Under the pieces are notes generated by a model. That model worked only from the letters and a program-made list of their open reading frames with translations, ran no database searches and was not told the DNA's origin. This document shows positions 27,262 through 59,192 of a stretch of 64,000 nucleotides of DNA, piece after piece. A program made the translations under genes and the position numbers. The stretch's first letter is position 1; each line of letters starts with the position of its first letter. Source of the stretch: Diadema antillarum (taxonomy: Eukaryota); assembly GCF_040938485.1 (NCBI RefSeq), contig NW_027271112.1:434001-498000 (forward strand). The letters run 5' to 3'.

Positions 27262-28164
27262 ATGGCTGGAGTTTCTCCGTCGAGCCTCTGGCCTCGGCCG
27301 TTCTGGATACTCCTTGTTCTTGCATTTTCACCTGGACCTCTCGTTCAAGCTTCCAGGTTTTTGCTTCCCGCCACCTCCCTGGCCATCGCCAAGAGTCACT
27401 ATATGGGACTAAGCACTATCACAAGAGAACTGGTACTACGAGGACATGAAGTCACTTTCCTGCTCCTTGACAGGCGGGGAACGGCTGGCATGCTAGAAGG
27501 CTCTTACACCGACAACATCACTTACCCAAACTCGAAATCTGATGAGGAACTAGCCGCGGTATGGAGAGACATGACAGATGCAATGGACAATTACTCAAGT
27601 TGGACCATATCGCAGACTGTCAAGAAGATTTCAAAATTATACGATAATCTGTACTTTGGTTGCTACGAGCTATTCCAGCATGGGGAAACCTTGGGAAAGC
27701 TGGAGGCGAAAAAGTTTGATATGGTGCTGTCCTCTCCAGTGGCAGATGCTTGTGACGCTGTGATCAGTGCTTATTTTGATGTATCCTTAGCTGTAGTCAC
27801 AGGATCCCGACGAAGTCCGTCTTTCAACGAAGACATCTTCGGCATACCCGTTCCAAGCTCGTACACCCCATACAGCCTCGCTCTTCAGCTCCCAGCCAAC
27901 ATGAATTTCTGGCAGCGGTTGGCAAATTTTGTGACACGATACACCATTCATCCCGTGATTGAGTATTTCGTGATAACTCTGCCAGTCGGCAGGCTGCAGG
28001 AGATGTATGACATCAGAAGAGACCTTATTCCGAAGCAACTGCTTCAGAGGGCCGACCTCTGGTTGTGTCACACCACTTTTGCACTGGACTCTGCCCGACC
28101 CATTACGCCAAACTGGGTTCCTATAGCTGGATTTACCACCAAACCACTTAATCCTCTGCCACAG
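27262..28164 (+). CDS. UDP-glucuronosyltransferase-family variable first exon 1a (signal peptide + acceptor-binding domain), intact, 903 nt
   Basis: ATG 27262, hydrophobic signal peptide, KSHY catalytic-His motif, ELVLRGHEVT, FDMVL, GIPVPSSYTP, MNFWQRLAN, ADLWL..T.FALDSARP.TPNWVPIAG. Ends PLPQ at phase-0 donor CAG|GTACCG. No constant exons found before the next first exon. Confidence 0.88.
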
Positions 28165-28599
28165 GTACCGACATAAACTTCGCATTTTCCTATAGGTGTT
28201 CCGATCATGCCCCGAATCAAGGGTCGTTTTTTCCTATTAAAATTCCTATCTATTCACCATCACCAGGGTTACTCATTTCCCTTTTAGTGAAAATCGTTGG
28301 CTGTATGTATGATTATACATGAAATTAGGTTCATTTTTAGTTGTCAAAATTGACATCAGTGCAGCGCACCACAACCATTCCCAGTGACGTCACACAGGCA
28401 TGAGTTCATGCACTGCTGATGACGGCTGTCCAGAACGTAACAGGTGCATTCCTTTAATAGTCCAAAGAATGGACGGCTATTCATGAAGTGAAAAAAAAAA
28501 ATCTCTGACAGTTCTTCTGTCTTCTGCCTTAAACGAATGTAGAGAGCCATGCGTTCTCTGCGAAGCTGTTGAGACCATCCTGACTGCATGTTATCGGCT

Positions 28600-29790
28600 G
28601 ACGATCAGAGATAATCGTCTACTTAGAGCTCAAAACATATGAAAAGCCGTATAAAGAGTCCAGTTTTTTTTATTCATCCCTTTCCAAGTAGGTCGTGACG
28701 AACAAATCTCTTTGTAAGGGTCTAGTCAGGTGCAGATAGAGGATGCTCGCGACATTCTGTAGCTGCGGACGATTTTCCTTAGTAGATTGACAGTTCTGTC
28801 AGCCGTCGCCTCTATGAGTTCGCAAATGCTGTGTGCTTAGACGAGAAAAGCGCACTGACCTCATCCGTGGAATGCCATTTGAACAACATCTGCAGGGAAT
28901 GAGAGCCCATAATTATGTTCACCATCTCCGCAATGGTGTATTCATAGAACAGAATGATGATAGGACATCTTCAATGGATTCAGATACGAGTATGATGGGT
29001 TGACTTTGGTAATGTCTAGGCCCTTCTCGCCGTTGACTTTCCTCCACTACAACATGAGTTCCTATATAGTTTCTGCTCGGAATCCGCCATGATGACCGTA
29101 TAGTTACATCGAAGATTATTAAATATACTTTCCCGACAGAAAACCCCACGATTACTATGTGTACAATAACGAAAGCAAGTTTGGCGGCATGATGCAACTT
29201 TGTCTTATATCATGTATATTGTACTTCCGTCCTCACCGACACAGTCATGCTTTATACTCCACTGTATCTGACCTGTTAGTCACAATGCACGTTTTTTGAT
29301 AAGTTCTACATTATTATGGGAGGGGTGGGGCATCAATATCTAATGCTGATAGTTACTATATCGACCGTCGATGCATATGCTTGCCACGGTGAAAAGTCTT
29401 GGCCATTAGTCAACGAAGCACACATCAAGATCGGCGGTCTGCATTTCACTTATATTACTTTACCTGTCCATCATTCTCCAGACAAAGGTGGTTTTTCTTG
29501 ACACCGAGTATAGATTCGTCTTCACAATCTCTTTGTAAGGAAAGTTCTTGGTAATTACCGTAAACTAAGCTCACCCTGCCTACTTCTGCTCCATATAAGT
29601 CTACCATCTGCCGGAGATCCGAAAGTCTTTCTGTGCCCGTTGTATACTATAGCGAGGCCTCCGGGATCTCAGCGGCAATATAGATTCTCTGAACAAGAGG
29701 TGGGATAGCGTTCTTCCTATAGGAGAGAGATGGCTTCGATAAAGACAGACAGTCCGTCATGGTCTTCTTGAGCCCTTCTCTGTATACTTG
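28600..29790 (-). pseudogene. decayed coding-like sequence of unknown family inside the UGT duplication unit (copy 1)
   Basis: GC-richer block with protein-like fragments on the minus strand (QPIILVSESIEDVLSSFCSM; TERLSDLRQMVDLYGAEVG..LQRDCEDESILG), broken by stops and indels. Paralogous to 35980-37290. Confidence 0.35.
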
Positions 29791-58557: not shown

Positions 58558-58608
<51 letters not shown>

Positions 58609-58909
58609 AGGCGTACATATAACTTCTTCGTTATATCTCGTCAGCATATTTTTTTTTTATTCGTTTATGCATATATCAATTAAGAAAGGATGTAATCTAT
58701 ATAGATAAGTGATGGTCAAAGACAAAGTAATGGCATGACTGGTTTCACTTTAAAGTCCTTTTTTGTCATGCTCACTGCACCATGCGCTGTATTAGGGAAG
58801 CGTGGATTTCTTGAGTGACATAACTGTCACATGATATGTCTGAGAAAAGATATAGATAAGGCCAAATCAATATGAAAGCTCGAAATTTTTCGTTGATTTC
58901 TTGGTACAG

Positions 58910-59192
58910 ATTCAAGACAAATGCAGCCAAAGCATCGGCCATCTTCCAAGATGATCTCATGAAGCCGCTCGACCGCGCGATATTTTGGATTGAGCACGTG
59001 ATCAAGTTTGGCGGGGCGCATCTACGTACAAGGGCCAACGACTTGAATTTCATCACGCGAAACTGCCTGGATGTCCTAGCTGTTATCATTACATCAGTCC
59101 TATTAATGATGTATGTGTTTGTCCGTTTCTTTATGTTGTTGACTCGATGTTGCTGTGCCAGAAACCGAGGACAGAAAGTAAAAGCAGATTAG
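58910..59192 (+). CDS. UGT constant exon 5 (283 nt), TM helix and ER-retrieval tail
   Basis: TACAG|A...; encodes FKTNA..PLDRAIFWIEHVIKFGGAHLR, a hydrophobic TM segment, and C-terminal KVKAD (KxKxx). Stop TAG at 59190-59192. Confidence 0.93.

Follow-up and report, generated by a model that had tools for sequence, protein, structure and literature searches.

A probable UGT1A-like variable/constant cassette with three first exons in the sea urchin Diadema antillarum

Can a sea urchin genome hold a UDP-glycosyltransferase (UGT) gene in which alternative first exons are spliced to one common set of downstream exons? The question is raised by a window of 64 000 nucleotides (64 kb) from Diadema antillarum, taken from contig JBFRCO010000224.1 of assembly GCA_040938485.1 (base 1 of the window corresponds approximately to base 434001 of the record), in which three tandem UGT first exons, here called 1a, 1b and 1c, are followed by exons 2 to 5. 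In vertebrate UGT1A, tandem first exons, each encoding a signal peptide and an aglycone-binding domain, are joined to shared exons for the donor domain and the membrane anchor (PMC2819257, PMC9209448), and Li and Wu described this variable/constant organisation of Ugt genes in 2007 as specific to vertebrates (PMC1885805). RefSeq joins 1c alone to exons 2-5 of the Diadema locus and presents 1a and 1b as separate truncated proteins. We favour another reading, to which we give a probability of about 0.7: the locus would be a lineage-specific, working, UGT1A-like variable/constant cassette that has been mis-annotated. We do so because the layout is repeated between the same ketohexokinase (KHK) and NACHT-domain genes in a second contig and in Diadema setosum, because the two exons not accompanied by constant exons, 1a and 1b, are under purifying selection, because splice donors and the catalytic histidine are kept and no conserved poly(A) signal follows 1a or 1b, and because a UGT gene of Strongylocentrotus purpuratus with two first exons constitutes an echinoid positive control.

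Organisation of the locus

The three first exons share 76-85% protein identity (coordinates are given in Table 1). The product of 1c and exons 2-5 is 100% identical to the RefSeq protein XP_071491818.1 (P0168, 542 amino acids) and matches the Pfam UDPGT profile (PF00201) over positions 7-493 of 499 with E=5.9e-111; exon 1a alone matches positions 6-263 of the same profile (E=1.2e-27). By inspection, all three first exons begin with a hydrophobic, signal-like N-terminus. The UDP-sugar-binding domain and the membrane anchor both come from the single exon 2-5 set: the UDP-sugar signature, which we take to be W-x2-Q...HGG...E...P...D-Q, can be read directly in exons 3 and 4, and the C-terminus, again by inspection, consists of VLAVIITSVLLMMYVFVRFFMLL followed by the basic tail RNRGQKVKAD. 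The first-pass annotation had proposed three tandem first exons ending in PLPQ with phase-0 donors, one set of C-terminal exons and a KHK gene as upstream boundary, and all of this held up when the sequence was re-analysed. Exons 1a and 1c are intact. The frame of 1b is broken in the window copy by 7 extra nucleotides (34461-34467) and 3 extra nucleotides (34547-34549), so that here it is a pseudo-exon. A tblastn search with the constant part over the whole 64-kb window (word size 2, E<=100) returned the four true exons and no extra copy of exons 2-5, the next best match having E=1.2. Sequences at 52662-52853 and 32693-32800, considered as degenerate copies of exons 2-5, were rejected as the best of the noise matches, their positions not being homologous between repeat units.

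A CAG/GTA donor (the slash marks the exon end here and below) stands in phase 0 at all nine first-exon copies known from two D. antillarum contigs and D. setosum, exon 2 starts in phase 0, and the donors of 1a and 1b are no weaker than the 1c donor that RefSeq uses. About 170-200 bp of 5' flank are also conserved in 9/9 copies over the two species, with the blocks CATGAT-AAACCATCA and GGAAGTG-ACTT aligning across all nine. Transcription would then start at one first exon, from its own conserved flank; the donor of the chosen exon would pair with the single strong acceptor of exon 2, and any first exon further downstream would be removed as intron, the 1a-to-exon 2 intron measuring about 28 kb in the window copy. 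The enzymes predicted from this scheme would have a common donor domain, while their acceptor domains would be distinct. Such a choice of promoter and donor, with downstream first exons spliced out, is the established rule in vertebrate Ugt1 and in clustered protocadherins (PMC2819257).

In a protein alignment, all three first exons keep the catalytic histidine (SHY, against SHW in vertebrates). Where vertebrate UGTs have the aspartate of the (T/S)DP motif, all aligned echinoderm UGTs have Ser, Phe or Thr-Phe (around residues 156-166 of P0168); they carry one additional residue and, slightly further downstream within an xCD motif, a conserved Asp. This change belongs to the whole echinoderm clade and not to the Diadema locus, and the clade may have a different arrangement of the catalytic dyad. 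Exons 1a and 1c differ at about 24% of residues, spread over the acceptor domain and densest in codons 1-30 and 91-150, a pattern that would fit distinct acceptor preferences.

Table 1. Positions of the UGT array and neighbouring features in the 64-kb window of D. antillarum
Feature	Position	Strand	Description
Ketohexokinase-like (PfkB) gene, upstream neighbour	18391-23857	+	Pfam PfkB E=2.9e-17 on last exon (23456-23857); KHK-like exon reading frames
5' flank of 1a	27095-27261	+	Conserved in flank alignment; candidate proximal promoter/5' untranslated region
Variable first exon 1a	27262-28164	+	903 nt, 301 codons, ATG start, open frame, PLPQ end, donor CAG/GTACCG
Spacer after 1a	28165-33592	+	Part of ~6.5 kb unit; intronic in the case of 1a-to-exon 2 splicing; no UGT constant-exon copies
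5' flank of 1b	33593-33775	+	Conserved in flank alignment
Variable first exon 1b	33776-34688	+	913 nt, homologous to 1a/1c, 4 in-frame stops, donor CAG/GTATCG kept
8.4 kb insertion in spacer after 1b	37724-46095	-	LINE-type (long interspersed nuclear element) endonuclease and reverse-transcriptase open reading frame, 41997-43832 (minus); Pfam Exo_endo_phos_2, RVT_1
5' flank of 1c	52884-53099	+	Conserved in flank alignment
Variable first exon 1c	53100-54002	+	903 nt, 301 codons, ATG start, open frame, PLPQ end, donor CAG/GTATAT
Constant exon 2	56176-56232	+	57 nt, phase 0; long strong polypyrimidine tract, then acceptor cag/AAA
Constant exon 3	57002-57167	+	166 nt, phase 1 at end
Constant exon 4	58193-58412	+	Exactly 220 nt; UDP-sugar binding signature HGG...PLFGDQ
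Constant exon 5	58910-59192	+	Transmembrane anchor, basic tail, stop codon
NACHT-domain gene (start), downstream neighbour	62821-64000	-	Large gene, 1191 amino acids in gene call

Recurrence of the layout and selection on the first exons

Contig JBFRCO010000247.1 of D. antillarum carries a second collinear copy with KHK, 1a, 1b, 1c and one constant set, the PfkB/KHK gene that borders the array on its 5' side being called at the equivalent place. The introns of the two contigs differ by 2-8%. The assembly is 1.73 Gb long, whereas the haploid genome is estimated at 0.70 Gb, and 84% of BUSCOs are duplicated (bioRxiv 10.64898/2026.05.24.727502); most likely the second copy is the other haplotype, a true duplicate being possible. 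In D. setosum (OZ188201.1) three intact first exons and one constant set are followed by the NACHT gene, and the gene order KHK, UGT array, NACHT is common to both species. Only one of the nine first-exon copies, 1b of the window, is broken; the eight intact ones include 1b on JBFRCO010000247.1 (P0002, 304 amino acids) and in D. setosum. Two earlier proposals have to be revised here. The duplication had been considered young, but because the three-plus-one layout is present in both species it must be older than their split, and so it is not very young. Two enzymes had been predicted; with 1b intact on the second contig, D. antillarum could, as far as the sequence tells, make up to three. Divergence between the two D. 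antillarum copies is very uneven over the locus: 14/301 residues differ in exon 1c (53100-54002 against 19167-20069 of the second copy, L002), with a dS of 0.076, and 4 residues differ in exon 1a, with a dS of 0.009.

Between D. antillarum and D. setosum, the NG86 estimate of dN/dS is 0.27 for 1a (bootstrap confidence interval 0.16-0.45), 0.32 for 1b, 0.38 for 1c and 0.19 for the constant exons. A value near 1 for 1a, which had been named beforehand as the outcome that would make this exon an orphan, is thus not what was obtained. A GY+F3X4 codon model restricted to the five undamaged sequences of 1a and 1b gave an omega of 0.43 and rejected omega=1 (twice the log-likelihood difference 24.9, p=6e-7). 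Gap openings occur in the introns of the locus at 15-25 per kb between the species; at that rate about 16 indels would be expected in exon 1a, against 0 observed (P about 1e-7). In neutral simulations at the observed dS, the open frame was kept in only about 1% of cases. Exons 1a and 1b are under purifying selection, with omega at 0.27-0.43. An oddly low divergence of the post-1a spacer from D. setosum (p=0.06-0.08) was dropped as a candidate signal, because it is within the range of the constant-region introns (0.08-0.16).

Evidence on whether echinoids splice UGT genes in this way comes from a gene of S. purpuratus annotated as UGT '2C1' (AAGJ06000018.1; 6528-14051 of L012), in which two tandem first exons precede one constant set. 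The first exons are of 888 nt (296 codons) each, are 90% identical and end in PLPK/GTAAAT and PLPQ/GTATAA, and the constant exons, of about 57-60, 170, 220 and 285 nt, follow the same pattern as in Diadema. RefSeq gives two isoforms of 538 amino acids each, X1 (XP_003729661.2) and X2 (XP_797549.2), with 29 differences, all in residues 4-296. The NCBI pipeline is understood to give alternative variants only where they are backed by aligned transcripts, and these isoforms therefore raise the prior for splicing of this design in echinoids. The S. purpuratus gene belongs to a different UGT subfamily and has two first exons instead of three; since it is only 41% identical to the Diadema gene, its cassette is a separate duplication. 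In its annotation the upstream first exon is spliced to the shared set, unlike 1a and 1b of Diadema.

Arguments against splicing and competing explanations

A number of observations weigh against the cassette. A collection of 5.8 billion proteins, queried with P0168 and with exon 1a, contained the constant part fused to 1c only, and to neither 1a nor 1b, and Logan transcript contigs contained no form of the Diadema gene at all; since even the 1c form has no transcript-derived (Logan) copy, however, the missing 1a and 1b forms are uninformative. Two independent RefSeq annotations, both using RNA-seq, keep 1a and 1b as stand-alone genes, which counts weakly against splicing in the sampled tissues. 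In the window these models comprise 304 amino acids for 1a and 235 for the broken 1b, and the 1a and 1b reading frames extend three codons into the intron (PLPQ+VPT and PLPQ+VSR), the same being seen in both Diadema species. Most likely the 304-residue models of 1a and 1b are annotation artefacts. Gene conversion is a further concern: the proportion of synonymous differences between 1a and 1c falls to 0.04-0.08 in codons 61-90 and 241-300, against 0.2-0.6 elsewhere, and 1a and 1b of D. setosum are 95.6% identical. Conversion among first exons blurs orthology, which makes the strict orthology of 1b uncertain, and could inflate the apparent constraint. Finally, 1b with its frameshift is an example of a first exon whose loss carries no obvious cost.

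If conversion were frequent enough, 1a and 1b could be non-functional partial duplicates, whose constraint would only be mimicked by repeated conversion from the functional exon. The visible conversion tracts, the frameshift of 1b in the window copy and the fact that no spliced product of 1a or 1b is on record would all suit such an explanation. Against it stands the history of 1a. In the tree of first exons 1a forms its own clade, the D. antillarum pair having 100/100 support and the D. setosum 1a being its sister, and 1a differs from 1c by about 15% of nucleotides in both species; overwriting by 1c since the split cannot therefore account for the constraint on 1a. As the changes on the 1a lineage are moreover mostly synonymous (omega 0.27), with zero indels, we hold this to be the least probable of the alternatives considered. 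A slightly better case, although still an unlikely one, can be made for 1a and 1b as selected stand-alone genes, instead of or besides being alternative first exons, producing soluble, secreted or endoplasmic reticulum-luminal proteins of about 304 amino acids that consist of the acceptor domain only and act as ligand binders or as modulators of full-length UGTs. RefSeq models of this kind exist in both species and on both contigs, an in-frame TAA stands three codons past the donor in 6/6 copies of 1a and 1b, and purifying selection implies that the reading frames are translated in some form. Truncated UGT variants are known in other animals, and short-form Ugt1 proteins reduce the activity of the normal enzyme (PMC9209448, PMC2819257). 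If true, half a UGT would have given rise to a new functional class. But the product would have neither the UDP-sugar domain nor the membrane anchor, its catalytic histidine and pattern of constraint match those of 1c, and no conserved poly(A) signal lies downstream of 1a or 1b, 1b having none at all within 600 nt in every copy. A genuine vertebrate UGT1A cluster, that of the pigeon, likewise has a stand-alone first-exon model of about 307 amino acids, which illustrates that such models can be artefacts.

The remaining alternative leaves the cassette product unchanged and concerns only how the choice is made: the three coding exons could be mutually exclusive internal exons, spliced to a shared upstream non-coding leader exon that is transcribed from a single promoter. 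An AG aligned 12-13 nt before the ATG in all copies (...CTTTAG/GCC in 1a, ...CACAG/TCA in 1b and 1c) could serve as acceptor, and there is a precedent in zebrafish, where one 5' non-coding exon serves Ugt5a1-4, whose coding exons are joined to it in a mutually exclusive manner (PMC2819257). The polypyrimidine tracts before these AGs are poor, however, and the conserved flank of some 170-200 bp at every copy better suits individual promoters. A TATA-like box 5' of 1b and 1c in D. antillarum is not conserved in D. setosum and was not used as evidence for either the separate-promoter or the leader-exon model. We regard a common leader as improbable, if a little less so than the two preceding explanations, and keep to a cassette with putative separate promoters.

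Origin of the array and comparison with other cassettes

The array arose within the Diadema lineage when exon 1 was duplicated in tandem along with the sequence flanking it, and later evolved by birth and death with some gene conversion. The repeat unit of about 6.5 kb is composed of the 5' flank, exon 1 and the spacer; in a self-blastn comparison, 27153-33271 aligns in order with the unit 3' of exon 1b. Upstream of the exons, 1b and 1c remain similar over about 2.5 kb. As 1a shares only about 110-200 bp with either of them there, its regulation may differ. All Diadema first exons cluster together in the tree, and the closest homologues in S. purpuratus and Lytechinus variegatus, like the paralogues in Diadema, are complete single genes that lack the PLPQ intron: their exon 1 continues through the exon 2 segment, and they occur as whole-gene tandem copies. 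Among these nearest homologues and paralogues, no array shared with outgroups between Diadema and vertebrates was encountered. The duplicates being specific to Diadema, the array is not orthologous to vertebrate UGT1A, and the independent origin suggested by the first-pass annotation is supported: the sequence comparisons argue that the array does not descend from the vertebrate one. Other UGT subfamilies expand by whole-gene tandem duplication; JBFRCO010000364.1 of D. antillarum (L010) and a region of S. purpuratus (L007) each contain three complete UGT genes without a PLPQ intron. It is the PLPQ intron that keeps a duplicated exon 1 usable. Since this intron is found in the S. purpuratus cassette gene, in another echinoid contig (CAA/GTAAGC) and in vertebrate UGT1, its position may be old in deuterostomes, the arrays themselves being lineage-specific.

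With vertebrate UGT1A the Diadema locus has in common the variable/constant layout and the presence of pseudo-exons. The resemblance extends to exon boundaries, as had been proposed: the UGT1A cluster of the pigeon has the end of its exon 1 at the aligned ...PLPK/EFEA column and an exon 4 of about 220 nt. The Diadema array is smaller, with 3 first exons against 9-13, and has one constant exon more, exons 2 and 3 of vertebrate UGT1A (220 nt) corresponding to the 57+166 nt of Diadema; furthermore, there is proof of splicing and of separate promoters for vertebrates, but for Diadema both are inferences. The pigeon gene set may also guide what to expect of such arrays under automatic annotation: a stand-alone 307-residue product is placed on a frameshifted first exon (16478-17399 of L011), beside five overlapping genes with a common 3' end. 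In zebrafish, the Ugt2a/Ugt2b and Ugt5a clusters are likewise small, with variable exons and a common constant region, and the variable exons of Ugt2b2 and Ugt2b4 are frameshifted by insertions, like 1b of Diadema (PMC2819257). The zebrafish clusters differ in belonging to vertebrate lineages, in having their splicing proven by cloned cDNAs and, for Ugt5a, in the common 5' non-coding exon. The clustered protocadherins (Pcdh alpha and gamma) are similar in having multiple variable first exons, the choice of promoter setting which donor reaches the constant acceptor (PMC2819257), but they represent an unrelated protein family with far larger arrays and stochastic neuronal expression.

Taken with the S. 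purpuratus gene, the Diadema array suggests that echinoids have built the variable-first-exon UGT design independently at least twice, with the break at the same inter-domain point. We found no paper describing the S. purpuratus gene with two first exons, and no UGT cassette published from echinoderms or other invertebrates in the open-access text that was searched. The earlier remark that the design was not known to be described in echinoderms holds to that extent, but a comparable S. purpuratus gene had already been annotated as RefSeq isoforms. Some gene models of echinoids that look truncated may conceal further cassettes. A protein of Lytechinus pictus (XP_054761343.1), in a cluster related to the S. 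purpuratus gene, is a stand-alone first-exon model of 302 amino acids ending in ALPK+VLYSVI. Among about 46 representatives of echinoderm UGT clusters, no pairs with identical C-terminal halves were found, the S. purpuratus pair having been contained in one 90% cluster. Matches of about 300 amino acids in other taxa, which resemble first-exon-only genes, were discarded as gene calls on short ENA (European Nucleotide Archive) or Logan contigs.

Because it is small and recent, with a traceable repeat unit, conversion tracts and one exon polymorphic for a frameshift, the Diadema array offers a handy snapshot of the beginnings of a cassette. Three RefSeq 'genes' in two Diadema species are probably one gene, which affects counts of detoxification genes and proteins in sea urchins. 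D. antillarum is a keystone reef grazer that eats chemically defended algae, and given this diet, enzymes with differing acceptor specificity would be of ecological interest.

The spacers of the array have also received insertions. The 8.4 kb element after 1b is absent from the second D. antillarum contig; a direct repeat of about 800 bp lies within it, at 38012-39300. A 941-bp repeat occurs in two copies that are 97% identical, at 6484-7424 and, inverted, at 48236-49166. The latter copy, located in a UGT spacer, is missing from the second contig and looks like a young mobile-element insertion. Lastly, a 405-bp tandem duplication (51811-52215 and 52212-52615, 99.75% identical) is found about 0.5-1.3 kb 5' of exon 1c.

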